From Tubulanus polymorphus (Eukaryota > Animalia > Nemertea): a stretch of 64,000 nt of DNA. The translations under genes were made by a program, and so were the position numbers. Within the stretch, counting starts at the first letter, position 1. Each line of letters starts with the position of its first letter. Location of the stretch: contig NW_027437456.1 of NCBI RefSeq assembly GCF_964204645.1, positions 1 to 64,000 of the forward strand, given 5' to 3'. Below the pieces are notes generated by a model. That model saw only the letters and a program-made list of their open reading frames with translations, had not been told where the DNA came from and did no database searches. Shown here piece after piece: positions 19,944-30,703 of the stretch.

Positions 19944-21104
19944 TGAAATATAGCTGCTAAGGGATGAAAATCTTCCGACCATAGTCGGATTTCCGACCTT
20001 TTCTAACATTTTCTTTATTCCTGAGAACAGTCTAAATCACCTCAATCGCTTTGATCACCTAAATCGCGGGCGTCACATTGGAGCGCTCCGTAGTTAGGAG
20101 TGCTCCTTAAGACGGTTTTCGGCAGTTGTTGGCACAACTGTGGAGTCGGAGAAACCAATATGGCGTCTCATTCAAAAAGCGGCTCTAATTCAGGCCCAAA
20201 CTATTAACATTTTTACCAAAAGGAAGTAAGTTTTTTGACTCAAAGTTACTGATTTTTGTTCCCCCAAAAAATTCTTTTTTTGAAAATATTCAGGTATATA
20301 ATAGTCACTAAATTGACAAGTTACTCGGGCACTTGCTCGGCCGAGGATAATTGAAGAAGGTATTTGCTCGGCCGAGTGAGTGGTTAAATTCGGCGGTCTA
20401 CTCGGCCGAGCTAACAGTATAGTAATTCCTTTACTCGGCCGAGTAAACGATAGAATTCGGCGGTCCACTCGGCCGAGCATCATTTTAAAAAGTGGTTTAC
20501 TCGATCGAGTGACAGATCCAATTTTGCAATCTCACTCGACCGAGTAATTGAAATCTACTCACCAAGAGTTAGAATATGTTTTGCGCTATATACGGTGCAT
20601 GGGAAAAACCTATATATTTCGTGACAAAATCAATGATACGATACATTATGTAGGTTGCGCTGTACTACGTTTTGCGTTTTTTTTAACGAATTGACGTGAC
20701 CTATATTTGCCGTTTTAACGTGAGCAAATCGAGACTACTAGTATTTATTCTGAAAACCTTTTAAGAAAACGCAGTGCTTACGGCGAGACGGTGTCGGTCT
20801 TGATAACAGACAGCCACAAAATAGGTCTACTGACGCAACGTTTTTAAAGCTATATTTTCATACAATAATGACCCTCTCGTGACTGGTTTTGAATAGCAGT
20901 TACGTACGAGCAGTTCAGTTCTAATAAATGAATACGGGTTTTAATCATTTCTATCTTTTCTAAAGAAAGGGTCGTATAAATATTAAGCTTCTTATTTTGC
21001 GTGGCCTTTTATTCAATTATCCGGTCCATGTACGTAGCAAATTGTTGCATCATCACAATTTGTATTAAATAACGAACGATTATAATATAATATTATAATC
21101 GTTG

Positions 21105-24100
21105 CAGGGGCGGATCCAGGGGCATATTTTGACTGCCTTCTAAGAGAAATGAGGGCACCCAAAGGGGGAGCGCGGGGTAACCCCCTCGCCGGTGGGGGTT
21201 TGTGGGGTCTGCCCCAAGAAAATTTTTAATTTTCATGTCCTCAGATGCATTTTCCCAACATCTAGGACATATTTTTCTCAATCCTCACAATCCAAAATAA
21301 AGCCTTAAACACTGATGTAAGCAAAGTCTCCAACCAAAAATCCAAAATGCAGAAAGACATATGTTCAAGATTTATATATATATATATTTATTTTCAGTTT
21401 CATTTTCAGCATTTTTATGGTATGGTTACAACTTACATAATATTACAAGATTGCATAAAGTGAATATTTGTAATACATACTGGAAACAACATTTATGAAA
21501 ATGGCAATTTAAATATTTCCTTATTTAATATTGCATTTTGAGATAATTATCTCAATTATATTATTATATGAGTACATTGCACTAGGATCCTGTTATATAA
21601 TGTACAATGTATGCATAAAATACTATTTTCAATACCGATTTATTGCTTAAATACATATTTGAACTTTATATTTTTCAGTTAAAACACACAGACTCTCATA
21701 AATTTCAAATGAGACATACCCAGATACCAACAAATTGCACCATATTTCCACTATTTTTCAGTTAGCTCACACATTGCAAATGAGACATTTATGAAAGAAA
21801 ATAAAACTACTATATACACTACAAAATAAACATTTATCTCATAAAGTTATCAATATCCAATGTTATTTTTATCAAAATAACTTTAATCTACTGATACTGA
21901 ACTATATTATACTATATAATAATACTGATTGATTCAGCTCTGAATTACAATGCTGAGTAAATCATTCCAGCAAATAAATTCCAAATAATACTTTTCATAA
22001 TCTGACATAATCAACCATATATTTCAAAACATTTTACCACAAACAGCTATTAAAACTTGTAATTTCTGATATTTAACGGTTTATACTGTACACAAAACCA
22101 CAAGCAATAAGAATAAATTCATTAAAAAATTCCCATTAATACATATTTTGTCCTGACAGCAGTAAACCAGTCACAAAGGCAAACAACAATATCTGCTGAA
22201 CACAAAACTCAATCATGTCATGAATACCAGTTCTAGTTTATTATATCTAGCAGCGCCATCTTTCTAGGATGCTGACGGGCAAATATATCAATCACTGCCT
22301 GAATGTCAATTTTCTGGGAACTATAGACTGAAAGGAGAGCTAAGCCATTCATGCGGCTTTGATTCATGGTGCTTCGCAAATAAGTTTTGAGACGTCTCAG
22401 AAGTGAGACAGAGCGTTCACACTCACATGATGTAACGGGCATAGTCCCCAGTAACACTAATGCTGCCCTGATATTGGGAAACAAGTCAGCATCTACAATG
22501 GGTAGGAGTTGTGTAAGATGTTTTGGAACTTCTTTCTTGCTTTCAGCTGTCTTTTTCCAGTAAGATTCCCAAAGATGCAGTTCAACATTCAAAGAACTAG
22601 GTGATGGCAGGTCATCAATGTACTCCATACAGAATTCTTTGAATGGCTTCGCCCATTCTTTCTTAGCTAAAACCGTTGCTGGCAACACGGAGAATGCAGA
22701 AAGAATAGTTTCCTGACCACTGAAAAAACGATCATTTATCTCGAAATACAAATGATCCAGTATTGGTATAGCAATAGCACGTTTGAAGTACTGTTCTACT
22801 GACTCAGCTGGGATGTTGCTTCGCTGAGTCTGACGACCACATGTTCGGGGTTTTTGAATGTCAACTTCAAGCAAACTGGCTAAAGCGGTAGCCTGTTGAA
22901 ACCATAATAGGTAGTAGGAGTCGAGATTTGATCGATATTTCTCGATAGTATCACGGACAGCTTTTAAGCACAAATATGCACGATTGGAATCCTGGTTCGC
23001 GTACTGCAACTTTACGGTCAGACTAGTAGTCACACTCAGACATTCACGTGTCAAGATATAAGCGGCAATGAACGGAAAATTGGTAATCGCATGGTAGAGC
23101 CCATTTGCTTTTACCACAGAATCTGGATTCCAATGCTTTTCTGCATTCATTCTTATCAAATCCAGGGTTTCAACGACAGCCACCACTATATCCGAAAACA
23201 CCTCCATTACATCTAGGCGTTGGACCCATCTAGTTTGACAAATGTACAACAGCTTTGAGCGCTTACTTTCAGGGCACAGTACCTTGATCTTTTCAGAGAG
23301 TGCACCTTGTCGTTTTGGGGAATTTGAAAAAAATCTCGACAATTCCCCCAAAGTGTCCATCATGTTTTTCACCTGTGCAACTGATGCAGTTTTCGTGACG
23401 CAGAGATTAAGACGATGAGATGCACAGTGTACATATTTCACTTTGGGATACTGTGTTTTAATGCGAGTTGACGCACCCTTACATACACCAGACATATTTC
23501 CAGCCCCGTCAAAACATTGTCCTCTACAATCTTTCGTGTCAAGGCCAAGGCCTTCAACTGTTTCTATCAATAGTCGGGCTATTTCTTCCCCTGATGTACC
23601 AGAATCACACCAAATAAACTGCAGGAAAGATTCGTGAACTTCACCATTCGAATCAACATATCTCAGAATGAGAGGCATCTGTTCTATGTTGCTGCAATCC
23701 GATGCCTCATCAGCTAAAATTGAGAAGTAACGGTTCATTTTTATGTCATCTATAATTGTTTTTTGAATCCATTCTTTCAAACAGTCAATCAGTTCATTCT
23801 GAATGGTTTTAGAACGATATGTACTTGTTTTTGAACATTTTTTAAAATGTTCCATCAGTGTTGCATCACCAGCATCGCATCGAAACTCCAATAACTTTTG
23901 AAAATTACCAGAATTACTTTCTAAATCCAGATGTTTCGAGTCATCACGGTGTCCACGCAATGGGATATTTTGATTCCCAAGAAATATGACAGTTTTCAAA
24001 ATGGATTTCAGAATTTTGCGATTTTCAGCAATTCGTTTTTGATTTGTTGTACTCGTTAAATTGTTGACTCCAAGGGTTTGGGATTCCATTACACTGGGAA

Positions 24101-25417
24101 ACATTTTCTCACAGCAAACTGCATCATGATGTACTTTAGAGTTATCCCTATGGGATGTAAATCTAGAACTTGCGCATGTCCAGTCAATAAAGGGAGTCGA
24201 AACTAAACGTTCTAACTTGGCATCGTTTTTTTCTAATGTGCGACCAAAGAAAACACATGGTCGACAGAAAGCACCTGATAGTTCCTCGGAATATGCCAAC
24301 CAATGGAATTGTTTGAGCCAATCAGCATTAAATGAGCGGTTTTTAAGCCATATATGTCCGTTTTGGGAAATTTATACTTTTCTGTCGGCACCCACAAGTT
24401 ACATAAAGCATTGTACTTTTCAGCATCTTTCATTGTCCTTGTTTTGCCAATTAACAATCCAATATCTGAAAACAAAACAACAGATAAAGTCAAATTCTGT
24501 ACATGCACACATTCAAACAAGCAAAACAGAACTTACAAATATTCCTGGAAAGCTCCATAACACGCAATATTTGGCAACCATTCATTGGCCTATAAAAGTT
24601 ATAACTTAATCCAGGGGCGGATTAAGGGGATACGCCGCAATCTTGCCAAATAATTTCTCCAAATGTTTCTTCAGAATAGATAATGGATCCCCCTGTTGAC
24701 ACATGCAGAGAATTAAATAAGAAAATTATCGCATACAAACGTACTCATCATATTATTATTATTTGTGTCACGATTCTCATAGGCAGACATGATTTGATGA
24801 TGATCATTCGATGAAATCTGGGGTACCGGTACACTATCAGTTGGTACAATTACTGGAGTTTCAATCATCACTGCATTAGATGGTGGTGTAATTGATTCCC
24901 TGTCCATGATGTCAGAACTGGATGTCGTGGTTGTTTCGACGATATCATGTGGGTGGTCACCGGCTTCAGCACTCTCCGTGATGTCAGAACTGGATGTCGT
25001 GGTTGTTTCGACGATATCATGCGGATGGTCACCAGTGGCAGCATTAGAGTGATTAACTGGTTCCGCTGAACCACCATTGAAAACTAGAATACCGTAACTG
25101 CGGACATCGGCAACGGAAAACTGCGGACATCGGCATCGGAAGTTTTGATAACGACTCTCAGTTCATGCGGGTTGTAATGTGCCGGCCTGGGGTTACAGAT
25201 CGTTATCTCCAGTGCCCGACTCCCCCCCCCCCCCCCCCACACGAAAACTCATCGGAAAAGGTTCACTTCGAATCACGATTATAATCTATATGCTACTTTG
25301 CTATTGTAGATTTTTTACTATCACTTAAAAATAAAAAATGCGTTCCTTTAAGAGGGACGCTTGGGATTTTTTGACTGCCTTCCGGAAGGCATGGAAGGCA
25401 CCCTGGATCCGCCCCTG
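21105..25417 (-). mobile_element. hAT transposon (THAP12/PRKRIR- or ZMYM1-like transposase clade) nested in the KDZ element
   Basis: 17-bp TIRs caggggcggatccaggg (21105) and ccctggatccgcccctg (25401-25417) enclose the transposase. No matching 8-bp TSD is visible. Confidence 0.85.
22233..24299 (-). CDS. hAT transposase (688-aa open frame; the N-terminus extends upstream through a frameshift near 24345)
   Basis: TTF-type zinc finger WLAYS..GAFCRPC, then PLRGHRD, FSILADEASD, GQCFDGAGNMSG, YVHCASHRLNL and TRW, and the C-terminal dimerisation motif PVTSCECERSVSLLRRLKTYLRSTM. Confidence 0.93.
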   Translation of the reverse strand: MAYSEELSGAFCRPCVFFGRTLEKNDAKLERLVSTPFIDWTCASSRFTSHRDNSKVHHDAVCCEKMFPSVMESQTLGVNNLTSTTNQKRIAENRKILKSILKTVIFLGNQNIPLRGHRDDSKHLDLESNSGNFQKLLEFRCDAGDATLMEHFKKCSKTSTYRSKTIQNELIDCLKEWIQKTIIDDIKMNRYFSILADEASDCSNIEQMPLILRYVDSNGEVHESFLQFIWCDSGTSGEEIARLLIETVEGLGLDTKDCRGQCFDGAGNMSGVCKGASTRIKTQYPKVKYVHCASHRLNLCVTKTASVAQVKNMMDTLGELSRFFSNSPKRQGALSEKIKVLCPESKRSKLLYICQTRWVQRLDVMEVFSDIVVAVVETLDLIRMNAEKHWNPDSVVKANGLYHAITNFPFIAAYILTRECLSVTTSLTVKLQYANQDSNRAYLCLKAVRDTIEKYRSNLDSYYLLWFQQATALASLLEVDIQKPRTCGRQTQRSNIPAESVEQYFKRAIAIPILDHLYFEINDRFFSGQETILSAFSVLPATVLAKKEWAKPFKEFCMEYIDDLPSPSSLNVELHLWESYWKKTAESKKEVPKHLTQLLPIVDADLFPNIRAALVLLGTMPVTSCECERSVSLLRRLKTYLRSTMNQSRMNGLALLSVYSSQKIDIQAVIDIFARQHPRKMALLDIIN

Positions 25418-25736
25418 TATTACATTAAAGTTTGTTTCTTTTTCAAAAATCATTAATAGCATGCACTAAAGTTATTGTTCATATGATTCACGAGATATAA
25501 AAGTTACCCCTTCTTTGTTATGATGTTTGAAGGAAGAGTGCAGATGAGTGAAAATGTGTCTACGTTGAATAGTTGTAGTAACCCCTAGTTTGTCATGCAT
25601 GTAGCTTAGTAGGTAGATTTCCCCTAGTTCGCCTGCCGTACGTATTGTCCCTGCGCCCTTATACAATTATATAAATAGCCTACTGCCAGAACATCTTAAA
25701 CATTATTGAGATAAAACAACGAGACACACCAACAAA

Positions 25737-27863
25737 ATGAATTCTGCCAGCCTCAAAGCATGGAAATCCGTCGAAAAAGCGATAAAACGGTATACCGAAA
25801 TATCGAAAGAAGAGGCGGTAGCCGTAGTTATCTACAGGAACGTGAAAACTAAAGATCGAGGAGTTGCGATAACGGGGAGCAATGTTTTAAAAGAGTCGTT
25901 GAAAACACGGATATTGGATATTTGTGATGGAGTTACACCTGACGAGCAACCAGGAATAGTTGAAAGTGAAAACTTGATCACTTCGAATCAGTTTCCAAAT
26001 ATAACTGAGGTATACGGCAGAAGTTTAAATTCTCTGCCTAGTGATGACGCCAGAGTCCTGCTCACTAAATAAGTTTATTTGAGCAAAGTTTTAAGTGGAA
26101 TGAGTTCTACCAGCCCACACTGGGGAGATGAATCATGTCGTGTTCAGTGGTGGCCTGAAAACCTACCGTGGAGGAATCCCCGATGTGATATTCGTCCCGT
26201 CGAGGCGCGCTCGGAACCTTACGCAGATGTTGTAAGGAGAATTTTTCAGATCGGCCTATGTTTTTCATAAGTGTGAAAACTTGACAGGTACGCAAAAATA
26301 AATTTAATTCTAACCACTAATAAAATTGTTCTAAAGCAAAAATCAAGCAATTAAGAGTATAATGCAACCGCAAAAATGTCCTTTAAGGTAGAAAAAATGG
26401 CCTTGTCTATCATTTCATCACTAATACAGTAAATTTACCATAAAAAATACCAAAGAACAAACTTGGGAATTGTGTTAATAAATTGCACACTAACCATCGA
26501 AGAGAATTCATTAGGTGACCATGAGCGGGCCTAGAATTTTGGGCATTAACTAATTTTGCCTTTTGAAAACATGTGAACTCAAGCATGATACGTCAAATTT
26601 AAGGTTTTAAATGAATAATACAAATAATTAAATCAAAGTAGAGCCATTATTTGTTATCAAATTTTACAGATTTTCCGGAAATGTGAGCTACTGGTTTGAG
26701 ATAATAAAAACATATGGGTTGCGTCTATTCTTTTTTGAGAGAATTTATCTTTGTTGTTATAAAGATAAATCCTCTCAAACAGTATTATTTTATTTTCAGG
26801 AGACCCTGTACATGGTACTGAAGAAGTAGTCAATCAACCTGCAGCAACCACCTATATTACTGAATCAGGTAGTCTAAAATGAAAAATGAATTCAAGTTAA
26901 TACCCTTAATAATTGAACTAAATTGATTAGCCATCAGAAATATTGTTAACCTGTTACAAATTGTAGTGTTGTTCACTTGTAAATTGTGAACACCAGCCCA
27001 TTATACCTTAAATGTCAGTTTTCATGCATCAACACTTTTTATATCCAGTTTCTAGCATCGGTGAACTCGAGCAGCCAAACATTTAATATTTCTTAATCAA
27101 ATTGTTCATTAATTTGTGATTGCTTCGTTTCTTATATTGTAGAAGCTTTAGGTTCATCTCTACCAGCATTTGTCCGAGTCAGTGATCATGAATGCTATCG
27201 AGAATGGAGGAATTTCAGATGTCATTGCATTCAACATCACTGGATACCCTGGTATGTACATGTTTAACAATTATTTCATTTATTCATTAGGCCACACCAG
27301 AAGAAAACCGTTTCTCAGCCCGACCAACCCGATATTTAGTCGTTTCAAATAATCATTTCAAATTTGTTTTCTATAGAAAAAAATCCCTACCTACCTACCT
27401 ACCAATTTCTGTGATTGCCCCGCCTGAGAAAAGTTTTTTTCTTATGTGGCCTTACATGTAGCCTCATCCAATATCATTGACTGCATGAAAAAGGGCCAAA
27501 TAATAACATTATTCCTTTTCCGTCCACATGATGAAGTTTTTTTACCTCTTCCTCTGGAAGATTTGATTTTTGTGGGCAGACAATCTAATTAATGAAAAAG
27601 CCTCATTGTTATGATTATGCATGTACTTTAATTGTGAATGTCATACCATATCAATTTCAGATTTAGATGTCTCGGCACTCCACTCTACTGAAATGTCAGA
27701 AGAAACGGGCAATAAGACGTATGTCTTGGAAGAGAAGATGGAGAGGACCAAAAGGAAGAGGAAATTGACAGAAAAAAAAGCAGGATTACAGCCAGAAGAA
27801 AAAACGAATTCACTAAACCAAATTATTATCATTAACCATATTATTATTAATCATTTATTTTAA
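25737..27863 (+). pseudogene. Multi-exon gene with an NRF1/EWG/P3A2-like DNA-binding domain
   Basis: ORFs 25737..26072 and 26079..26270 share a frame (one TAA between them). PHWGDESCRVQWWPENLPWRNPRCDIR..YADVVRRIF(RSAYVFH) parallels NRF1 PGWGKESCKPIWWPEDIPWANVRSDVR..WTQALRTIVKNCYKQH. Further phase-1 exons lie at 26800-26868, 27143-27251 and from 27661 (KRKRK basic tail). Confidence 0.8.
27290..27451. mobile_element. MITE with ggccaca TIRs and TTA TSD (PIF/Harbinger-like), in an intron
   Basis: tta|ggccacaccagaagaaaa ... ttttttcttatgtggcc|tta. Confidence 0.65.
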
Positions 27864-27929
27864 TAAAATTCAATTTATAGATTCAGATATCAAATTTATT
27901 ATACTTTCGTTCTTTTATCTCGGTTTTTT

Positions 27930-28606
27930 ATTGCGAGGAACAAAGAAAGTGACGCATAAAGGTCTCAGGCTTCATATATGCTAACTGTGATTCTAACTGT
28001 TCGTTGACTTGGCTGTTGATATTTGTGACATCCACATTCGCTTTGTACAAGTCGAGAGAATATCCATCGCACCTGTAATTATAGTAGATTCAACATATCA
28101 AAAATGTTTCAATACAGTATGAACTCTTTACAATGATACTGCTTTAACCACAAAGGATTGATACTCCCAAACTAAAATGAAAAGACGTATTCAATTTATT
28201 TAGACTCCACTCTGGAATTGTGGGGGACCAAAAATGTGTGTTTATATGAGGATACTATAAATGGCGGAAAAGTGACACCAACTTTATATATCTGTACGAA
28301 TCAGGCGCAGTAACATAATATTTACCCTGTGTGATTTTTCCAGTGTAAGCGGTCATCACAGAACATTGTATTTCTGAAGAATTCTGGTTCTCTACAAAAT
28401 AATCAAAACAAGAAAGATGATTCACTCGATTTTTCATATCTATGAATAAGTTTCTTACGGACAATTTGTCAACTGAAGTGAAAACACTTACCTATTTAAA
28501 CAGTACTGATGTAGTTTACAAGCATTGTCGTACACGATAAGGTTAGGAGGTTTCGAAAACCTTGTCTTGAAGATGCTGAATGGGTGCTTCGGCGATTCGT
28601 GGCACC
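27930..28606 (-). pseudogene. C-terminal three exons of a KDZ transposase
   Basis: Exons about 28606-28492, 28391-28326 and 28072-about 27930 splice in phase to ESPKHPFSIFKTRFSKPPNLIVYDNACKLHQYCLNR|EPEFFRNTMFCDDRLHWKNHTG|CDGYSLDLYK..INSQVNEQ..LAYMKPETFMRH. The ORF track missed this region. Confidence 0.85.
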
Positions 28607-30703
28607 CACGGACATTTTCGAACCAATTGTTTGCTCGACTGACAGGGTCAGAACGAACGAACTACTGATATATTGGCCGAGTGTGACTGCAGAATTTAAT
28701 AAGTCACTCGGCCGAGTAGATTGGCGAATTCTATCGTTTACTCGGCCGAGTAAAGAACTTAAGTTTTACTGAGCTCGGCCGAGTGGATCGTCGAATTCGA
28801 ACAATCACTCGGCCGAGTAAACAACTTTCTGACATAATGCTCGGTCGAGCAAATGCCCGGGTAACTTGTCAATTGGGACCGTATTTTATAGCTCAAATAT
28901 TTTCAGACTTTTTCAATATGGGCCGTTTTCATCCCTGAGATGACGGGTTTTCTGCAAAGCCATTGAGAATGATGGGAATTGAAATAAAAAATGAAATGAA
29001 ATGAGTAGTAAATTGAAATACCGATACATAGAATAAAATGCATTGACAGATTCGAACCTAATATGCCACCACTGTGTAAACGTCAAATATGATTCAGCTT
29101 TGAAACCGAACATACGCGGACGTATAATCAACAAATATGAATTTATTTGACCAGGCATTTATTTTGGCATTCAAACATCATGATACTGTATCATCACCAT
29201 GCTTAAAAATGGATCCGTCCTATTAAGAACTCATCTTAAGCACCTGCTGAGTCGATCGATTGAGTGAATTTACAGATAAGGACGTATTATGATTTTGAAT
29301 AGATTTAAGAAGTTAATCTATTTATTGAAATATTTGAATAAATACATATGGTGTAGTGTAGATTCAATCAATAATTTATGAATTGATTTGGTCTGGGTTT
29401 CCCGCTGATGTTGATTTCGGCTTTTATGGATTGCAAATTCTATAGTGATAAACAATTTATACCTGCAACATGTGTGTAAATCAAACCTATTCCACTAGTT
29501 GCGCGTGTTTCCTTATAAACAGGTGAGTCACTCATGATCTGAGTAATTATGAAAATAATGTTCATTTAGTTATAGAAATTCATTGCCTTTTTGAAAATTC
29601 TATAATATTTGTTCCGTCCTAATTTTTATGACTGTATGAACCAATGATATGCTTTGTAAATATTATGTAATAAAATAAATTTGAATTTGAGTTAAATTTG
29701 AATATGAGAATCCAGCATAACTTGTGTTTTTAGGGTTTTCTGTTTCTTCACAGAAAACCCTATCGAAATTCGCGTGATTATTATTAGGGTTTTCTGACTT
29801 TCGTCGAAAACCCTCTTGTAATTCTGTTGATTATTATTATTAGGGTTTTCTGTTACATCACAGAAAACCCTATTGAGATTCGCGTGTTTCTTATTATTAG
29901 GGTTTTCTGTTATTTCACAGAAAACCCGATTGATATCCGCGTGATTATTATTATTATTATTTTCTTCCACACTATTTTTACCAAAAGAACATAGGCTTTG
30001 TTACCTTACCGCTGTTTCATATACAATCCATATAATATCGTTCAGCTCACTGAGATCTACAAATAGCCCGCGTGTTTTTTCACGAATCATCGTTACGAAA
30101 GCGCTGTCGGGCCGTAAACATCGAAAATTTAGCCCCATTCAATGGGGCGACATGTTTTTCGAGTCGTCATCCCGAAATCAACCCGCAGGCCGACTGTCAC
30201 TTCGATTATCAATTCAAGTATAAATGAACTCATTTATTGCCGCAGACTTCACATTCAGTCGCGGTCTTCAAACAGTGATTTTAACAATAGCCCATTTTCC
30301 TCATCAAATCATATTACCGATATACAGGAAATTTACTACTTTAGATTTTAAAAGCACTGTCGAGCCGTTAACATCGACGAATCGACGTGTGGCACTACAT
30401 CGTCGTTCCGGGGATCAGCTGCGAGTTTCACCTCATCATGAGAATCAAATCGAGTACAAATTAATTTATTACTACCAGTGATTTGGCTGCGGGCGTCAAG
30501 CAGTTAGTTTAGCAATACCTATTTTTCTATATCAAATTAACCGTGTAGCCTATTCAATAAGATAAATCATAAGTGTACCGGGGAGTCGTAGGCCTAAACG
30601 AAATACGCCGAAGAGATATAGCGGAGAAAAGCTGTTATGTCGACGAGGTATCAAAATAAAAGAATATATTACTTTATTCGGCCGCGGGCTTCAACCTCTA
30701 ATT

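Follow-up and report, generated by a model that had tools for sequence, protein, structure and literature searches.

Some DNA transposons encode a DNA-binding helper that acts at the element ends, such as TnpA, which accompanies TnpD in CACTA/En-Spm elements, and the Myb-like protein of PIF/Harbinger elements. In animals, many DNA-binding domains of transcription factors are derived from transposons, including the THAP, BED, CENP-B/pogo, and Myb-like domains. Host factors of the NRF1/EWG/P3A2 type are encoded by a single-copy gene, and the protein is long, with an activation region at its C terminus. The canonical architecture of Zisupton comprises SWIM, CxC4, and KDZ domains (PMC11343200), and the Zisupton transposase gene is multi-exon (PMC9297572). 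Zisupton and Dileera generate target-site duplications (TSDs) of 8 bp, whereas those of Kyakuja, which was reported without terminal inverted repeats (TIRs), are 7 bp; the KDZ elements of fungi have TET/JBP as additional genes (PMC12730594). Here, a window consisting of the first 64,000 nucleotides of contig NW_027437456.1 (C39 in our numbering) from the 268-Mb genome of the ribbon worm Tubulanus polymorphus was analyzed. The window contains a DNA transposon of 8604 bp at 20291-28894. Taken together, the evidence is best explained, and probably explained correctly, by a defective two-gene cut-and-paste transposon of the KDZ group, in which a convergent gene encodes an NRF1-type partner protein. 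The window copy itself is badly damaged, and it is the family that holds the interest.

As had been claimed in the initial annotation, long inverted repeats surround both genes in the window; they are ~200 bp in size (20289-20489 versus 28695-28896) and 75-81% complementary. Between 38 and 41 related element ends were found elsewhere in the genome, and the similarity to them starts at window positions 20289-20292. The 41 bases before the element start and the bases from 28895 on belong to another repeat family. An unoccupied member of this flanking repeat, C4:12879274-12879354, was found to align to both flanks with an overlap of 7 nt, and the element was therefore delimited to 20291-28894 with AAATATT as its TSD. 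The transposon that the initial annotation had placed at 20303-28880 was thus recovered, with limits that had to be moved outward. The palindrome CTCGGCCGAG starts at 20336, 20367, 20401, 20434, and 20468 in the left TIR, a spacing of ~33 bp, and the array continues with the variant CTCGATCGAG at 20500. The right TIR has four copies compared to the five on the left, starting at 28707, 28741, 28774, and 28808. A palindrome search of the element did not find CTCGGCCGAG in its 7.7-kb interior.

The transposase strings lie in three open stretches of the minus strand (28661-28491, 28402-28325, and 28089-27931), and the introns between them have GT..AG borders. The donor GTAAGT follows exon A after 28492, exon B is flanked by AG and GT, and exon C follows CAG. 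Both splice junctions (A/B and B/C) are in phase 2. These canonical phase-2 junctions indicate that the strings "...REP" and "...HTGC" are correct splice-joined readings, and they bear out the earlier description of three phase-compatible exons. Exon C terminates earlier than in other copies, with a frame change in the alignment near 27950.

The transposase was assigned through its homologues. Seven other copies supplied their large 5' exon for a profile, which gave 149 protein matches in a search of 1.8 billion representative proteins. The KDZ family PF18758 was shown by nine of the ten long homologues, five of them (P0006, P0010, P0017, P0036, and P0051) scoring above the curated cut-off. 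CxC4 (PF18717) was matched in seven of these ten proteins, and above the cut-off in P0005, P0010, P0119, and P0143; among the five full-length proteins with PF18758 above the cut-off, P0010 alone also passed that of CxC4, for which the remaining four scored lower. P0010, an open reading frame (ORF) of 896 residues on a 3.2-kb Logan contig, matches PF18758 at residues 737-873 with 35.3 bits against a cut-off of 26.6. The exons of the window, which were searched singly by reference and not as a joined spliced model, are colinear with P0010 at 73%, 52%, and 50% identity over the segments listed in Table 1. Since this colinear alignment falls inside the KDZ match of P0010, the window exons correspond to the last ~110 residues of the KDZ catalytic domain. 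The CxC4 region is in the part of the transposase that is deleted from the window copy. The 5' exon of other copies has a conserved SWIM-like motif, CxC...CxH; Pfam SWIM gave no match at E values up to 1, either in these 5' exons or in the long homologues, and no Pfam family at all was matched by the large 5' exons from the other ribbon-worm copies. Because there is no direct Pfam match at the ribbon-worm exons, KDZ membership rests on the homologues. By this route of sequence comparison, the window exons are placed in a KDZ-group transposase, and the KDZ identity given in the initial annotation is upheld by full-length homologues carrying both PF18758 and CxC4. Among the matches, P0119 and P0143 are distant CxC4/KDZ-like proteins from metagenome contigs (L047 and L048) that also have the giant-virus markers Pox_VLTF3, AEP_C962R primase, and DUF5899.

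The second gene of the window lies on the opposite strand. Its two reading frames, 25710-26069 and 26073-26267, are identical in phase and are separated solely by a TAA at 26070-26072. The ORF at 26073-26267 matched PF10491 (Nrf1_DNA-bind) with an E value of 1.5e-8 and 35 bits, compared to a curated cut-off of 23.5 bits. It contains the NRF1-like string noted previously, which was located at 26121-26195 on the plus strand, and the C-terminal end has diverged from its relatives after ~26240. In intact relatives, a single ORF encodes 184-188 residues, which cover PF10491 positions ~45-208 with 46-53 bits. A convergent spliced gene had been proposed here. The genes are on opposite strands and convergent, as stated, and the splicing did not hold up: a two-exon NRF1-like gene was ruled out by the single frame with its in-frame TAA and by the other copies, in which the gene is one open ORF of ~185 amino acids.

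Next, the genome was scanned for further copies. PF10491 was found at 22 places, which comprise five exons of the host NRF1 and 17 divergent single-frame matches. The host NRF1 is one multi-exon gene at C3:7491174-7492411 (exon scores of 96, 68, 67, 47, and 45 bits), and its core DNA-binding stretch is close to that of human NRF1, as judged by eye. Transposase exon A was found at 15 other genomic loci. At 11 of these 15, a PF10491 ORF lies 1.6-9 kb from the transposase exon, and the orientation is convergent in all. With the window counted, 12 of the 17 non-host PF10491 loci are convergent to a homologous transposase exon, and the NRF1-like ORF is open at 12 of the 17.

In a comparison set of ten loci of 14-20 kb, four subfamilies (S1-S4) were distinguished. 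Their elements are 7-9.7 kb in size, and the TIRs enclose a multi-exon transposase gene together with an NRF1-like ORF. The termini 5'-CAGGTATA...TATAGCTC-3' are shared by S1-S4. A 7-bp TSD was found in all eight complete copies of the four subfamilies, in one case with a single mismatch. The subterminal repeats are specific to each subfamily and restricted to the ends: CTCGGCCGAG in S4, CTCGCGCGAG in S2, GCTCATGAGC in S3, and CCGAGCAG, present 14 times, in S1. Amino acid identity of the NRF1-like proteins between subfamilies is 23-51%, and both domains are kept in every subfamily examined. A search for Nrf1-domain copies linked to KDZ transposases and TIRs, and for full-length copies with their TSDs, had been suggested in the initial annotation; the domain proved to be multicopy and linked, convergent at the 12 loci mentioned and within the TIRs and TSDs of S1-S4, and the eight complete copies provided the TSDs. 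The pairing of the two genes is a trait of the family. In all three S3 ORFs (L008, L009, and L015), a frame change or stop follows ...AGAVFF, and this shared interruption may represent either a short intron or a common defect.

The same pairing was found in other phyla. The closest named transposase homologues are from Ptychodera flava and Branchiostoma. In a lancelet (Branchiostoma) locus, L045, TIRs of ~880 bp that are 99-100% identical end in CAGGTAT..ATAGCTC, which match the terminal bases of the ribbon-worm elements, and are bordered by the 7-bp TSD TCTTGTT. They enclose a KDZ gene, with CxC4 matched in the exon at L045:11422-12870, and an ORF of 652 amino acids whose N-terminal 195 residues match PF10491 with 50.8 bits. 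In an acorn-worm (Ptychodera) locus, L046, a PF10491 ORF (42.8 bits) is convergent to the KDZ gene and lies 6 kb downstream; no pair of TIRs and TSDs carrying the family termini was found at this locus. At L049, from Branchiostoma lanceolatum, the neighboring gene reached only 14 bits against PF10491, below the cut-off. The left end of the first lancelet element is separated from the TSD by ten bases, CAGGTAGCTC (L045:8433-8442), which resemble the two termini joined together, as would be expected of a footprint left by excision or of a minimal solo element. In a word-indexed protein search, a profile of the NRF1-like ORFs had a single match, from T. polymorphus itself, a result of little weight because the search was limited in length and words. 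In the ESM Atlas, the nearest short-protein cluster (~210 amino acids, no common Pfam family) is commonest in molluscs, and two clusters with the NRF1 domain only (209 and 100 amino acids) are commonest in arthropods. These clusters are possible leads.

The structure of one intact NRF1-like protein was modeled with AlphaFold at a predicted local distance difference test score (pLDDT) of 80. The best match in the PDB was the human NRF1 homodimer bound to DNA (8k4l chains A and B; E 2e-9, 179-183 columns), and superposition on the NRF1 DNA-binding domain 8k3d gave a template modeling score of 0.73 and a root-mean-square deviation of 1.4 Å. The next structural matches were the MADS domains of SRF and MEF2, to which the NRF1 dimerization domain was likened by the authors of its structure (PMC10810270). 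A sequence search of the PDB also returned human NRF1, with an E value of 2e-7. The protein is predicted to have the fold of the NRF1 dimerization and DNA-binding domains. The NRF1 homology claimed from the window sequence is therefore borne out by the PF10491 score above the cut-off, the PDB sequence match, and the fold match to 8k4l and 8k3d.

A homodimer was also predicted. The model scored 0.72 compared to 0.00 for the best control; among solved structures, 21 of 30 homodimers and none of 23 single chains attained this mark. Three runs shared at least 91% of contacts, with partner pLDDT of at least 70, and the predicted interface comprises residues 1-69, the dimerization domain. NRF1 reads bases through R206, N242, and R244 (PMC10810270). 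The window copy (R..., RNPRCD) and most ribbon-worm copies have residues equivalent to all three; R244 is replaced by Lys in two subfamilies. N242 and R244 were placed by HMMER alignment, and the Arg at R206 by aligning the transposon proteins with the host NRF1 of the worm. The ratio of nonsynonymous to synonymous substitution rates (dN/dS) of the NRF1-like gene was 0.23-0.32 between subfamilies, with dS near saturation, and 0.3-1.5, i.e., near neutral, within subfamilies. The pattern between subfamilies is consistent with a gene that is important to active lineages.

We propose that the NRF1-like protein would form a homodimer through its dimerization domain, and that the dimer would occupy palindromes of the GCTC..GAGC type, specific to each subfamily, at the ends of its own element. 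Once bound, it would mark or bridge the ends for the transposase. The layout of the putative binding sites, with subterminal motifs restricted to the element ends, the modeled dimer, the equivalents of the NRF1 base-contact residues in most ribbon-worm copies, and the analogy with known helper proteins point in this direction. We hold this part of the interpretation tentatively, as plausible but slightly short of an even chance.

Several observations weigh against the interpretation of these elements as KDZ transposons with an NRF1-type partner acting at their ends. At five of the NRF1-like loci, no transposase exon was detected in the vicinity. The transposase pieces of the window gave no Pfam match, and a genome-wide PF18758 scan found other KDZ families and no direct match at the present loci. 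The TSD is 7 bp, compared to 8 bp for both Zisupton and Dileera (PMC12730594). The element repeats differ from the NRF1 site GCGCATGCGC, and their spacing varies by subfamily, with 2 or 4 bp between GCTC and GAGC. The dimer score may be due to the model having memorized the known structure of the NRF1 dimer; because that dimer was already solved, the modeled dimer shows likeness and is not proof. N242 and R244 are not retained in the lancelet and acorn-worm ORFs. Also, the sequence was not found in any RNA run: contigs from three runs on the transposase gene at L023:4200-10000 had no GT..AG joints. They span introns and exons alike and, with the missing joints, look like DNA. A fourth run, possibly of RNA, yielded nothing. 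These results do not indicate silence.

Another possible explanation is that the NRF1-like protein is a regulator, which switches the element's genes on or off, reads CpG methylation, or competes with a host factor, and is not a transposition cofactor. NRF1 is a transcription factor, its binding was described as methylation-sensitive in the initial annotation, and there are CpGs within the S4 and S2 palindromes. Furthermore, the TET/JBP demethylases of fungal KDZ elements (PMC12730594) provide a precedent in the group for accessory genes that handle methylation. However, the proteins of ~185 amino acids consist of the dimerization and DNA-binding domains only, without an activation region, and repeat arrays in both ends are the usual layout for sites of a transposase or cofactor. 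Regulation, or the reading of methylation, is the foremost alternative to end binding in transposition, and we consider it rather unlikely.

The NRF1-like ORF could also be passive cargo, a host gene fragment that was transduplicated and is not used. Capture of host gene fragments by DNA transposons occurs, the window copy is a pseudogene, and dN/dS within subfamilies is near 1. Against this, the ORF was found in every subfamily examined at 23-51% identity, with both domains kept, and is open at 12 of the 17 loci; it is paired with a homologous transposase in two deuterostome phyla too, and dN/dS between subfamilies is 0.23-0.32. Its identity to the host NRF1 of the worm is also no more than 25-38%, and that host protein is close to human NRF1 over the core stretch, as judged by eye. 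Because the NRF1-like gene is so widely retained, passive cargo is highly unlikely. There is only a very slim chance that the transposase belongs to another superfamily, e.g., a SWIM-bearing Mutator-like one, and that the KDZ label is wrong, since the lack of a Pfam KDZ match on any ribbon-worm exon, the Mutator/MULE protein P0043 among the 5'-exon-profile matches, and a 7-bp TSD unlike that of Zisupton are set against PF18758 in nine of ten long homologues (five above the cut-off), CxC4 in seven, identities of 50-73% within the KDZ domain for the window exons, a YDxxC...HWKxH..C...NEQ pattern that fits the KDZ core, and the 7-bp TSDs made by Kyakuja, a KDZ lineage (PMC12730594).

The features of the window copy are collected in Table 1. 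Its closest long relative, C7:9477433-9488976, served for comparison. Compared to this relative, the window copy lacks ~4.5 kb, which contained all the 5' transposase exons, and the deletion junction is at ~28601, within exon A. As a result of this deletion, the transposase is reduced to a 3' remnant, with a loss of ~88%. A nested hAT transposon of 4.3 kb fills half of the interior of the KDZ element. Its ORF at 22233-24299 (minus strand) is intact, encodes 688 amino acids, and matches DUF4371 (E 1e-21) and Dimer_Tnp_hAT (E 9e-7). The hAT TIR is present at both ends, and a third copy of the TIR start was seen internally at 24612. The ends of the nested hAT lack a clean 8-bp TSD.

Table 1. Positions of the transposon features in the window, with the basis for each.
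Feature	Position	Strand	Basis or remark
Left TSD copy AAATATT (7 bp)	20284..20290	.	Flanks are another repeat with an unoccupied copy
Left TIR, first bases CAGGTATATAAT	20291..20489	+	Inverted-repeat comparison and related genomic ends
Nested hAT transposon, TIR CAGGGGCGGATCCAGGG	21105..25417	-	ORF with DUF4371 and Dimer_Tnp_hAT; not in the C7 sister copy
NRF1-like accessory pseudogene	25737..26267	+	PF10491 positions 61-201 with the stop read through
KDZ transposase exon C, CDGYSLDLY...INSQVNEQ	27931..28072	-	Matches P0010 819-864
KDZ transposase exon B, EPEFF...DRLHWKNHTG	28326..28391	-	Matches P0010 793-815; AG acceptor and GT donor
KDZ transposase exon A, HESPKHPF...IVYDNACKLHQYCLN	28492..28601	-	73% identity to P0010 757-793; 5' side cut by the deletion
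Right TIR, last bases TTTTATAGCTC	28695..28894	-	Inverted-repeat comparison and related genomic ends
Right TSD copy AAATATT (7 bp)	28895..28901	.	Unoccupied-site alignment

The window copy cannot mobilize itself: most of the transposase is gone, the NRF1-like ORF is broken, and the hAT has been inserted. The initial annotation was right about the element at the level of the family, and the dead state of this copy, the nested hAT, and the deletion had gone unnoticed. In the C7 sister copy, part of the 5' transposase exons is duplicated in tandem (L041:2040-3790) and most of the NRF1-like ORF is missing, so this copy is likewise defective. The five NRF1-like loci without a detected transposase exon are C5:12791398, C6:14104886, C5:14822421, C3:14175013, and C3:14153574, and a fifth subfamily is among them. 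Outside the element, the flanks 20250-20290 and 28895-28942 have matches of 95-98% at about a dozen loci, and 28939-28988 has matches of 94% at more than 30 loci. Hairpin-forming repeats of ~32 bp (TAGGGTTTTCTG...CAGAAAACCCTA) are clustered directly outside the element at 29731-29944.

The transposon ORFs are 16-29% identical to one another across phyla and 25-38% identical to the host NRF1. An origin could not be read from these values: single and repeated capture are not distinguishable with distances this alike, and the comparison was with one host NRF1 exon. One scenario is that the NRF1/EWG/P3A2 factors and the transposon protein have a common origin in mobile DNA, the host NRF1 being a domesticated KDZ helper or having been captured once by KDZ elements early in bilaterians, and that the transposon version would be a methylation-sensitive reader of CpG palindromes, with only unmethylated copies being mobilized. 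We consider this scenario quite unlikely; if true, it would be an animal counterpart to the fungal partnership of KDZ with TET/JBP. No link between the unusual fold of NRF1 and transposons was found in the literature searched, and no NRF1-type partner of KDZ elements was mentioned there, the literature covered being that outside Repbase and the original Zisupton description. The present lineage, found in Nemertea, Cephalochordata, and Hemichordata with a minimal NRF1-type protein predicted to dimerize, makes the origin of the NRF1 domain directly testable. Counts of "NRF1 family" genes in invertebrates may contain transposon copies. The KDZ group would also be extended by an animal branch with TIRs, a 7-bp TSD, and two genes.

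Compared to the host NRF1/EWG/P3A2, the transposon protein is alike in its PF10491 match above the cut-off, its base-contact residues in most ribbon-worm copies, and its predicted homodimer. It differs in being ~185 amino acids long, usually intronless, multicopy, located within TIRs, and without the activation region; the 25-38% identity to the worm NRF1 also sets it apart from the host gene, which is separate and scores far higher. The likeness to CACTA and PIF/Harbinger, which is one of analogy, consists of a small separate DNA-binding protein and arrays of short subterminal repeats at both ends. In contrast to these systems, the helper has an NRF1-type fold, the transposase is of another superfamily, and end binding is putative.

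A third likeness is to Zisupton and other KDZ elements. It includes the KDZ domain and CxC4 of the homologues, the SWIM-like CxC..CxH of the ribbon-worm copies, a multi-exon transposase gene, and long elements with TSDs, an extra gene, and TIRs, which measure ~200 bp in the ribbon worm compared to ~880 bp in the lancelet. Unlike in Zisupton, Pfam SWIM is not matched in the present family, and the TSD is 7 bp in all eight ribbon-worm copies and in the lancelet, compared to 8 bp in Zisupton and Dileera. The 7-bp TSD is shared with Kyakuja, which was reported to lack the TIRs that are present here. Finally, the fungal KDZ elements carry TET/JBP as the accessory gene, whereas the accessory gene of the present family is of the NRF1 type.

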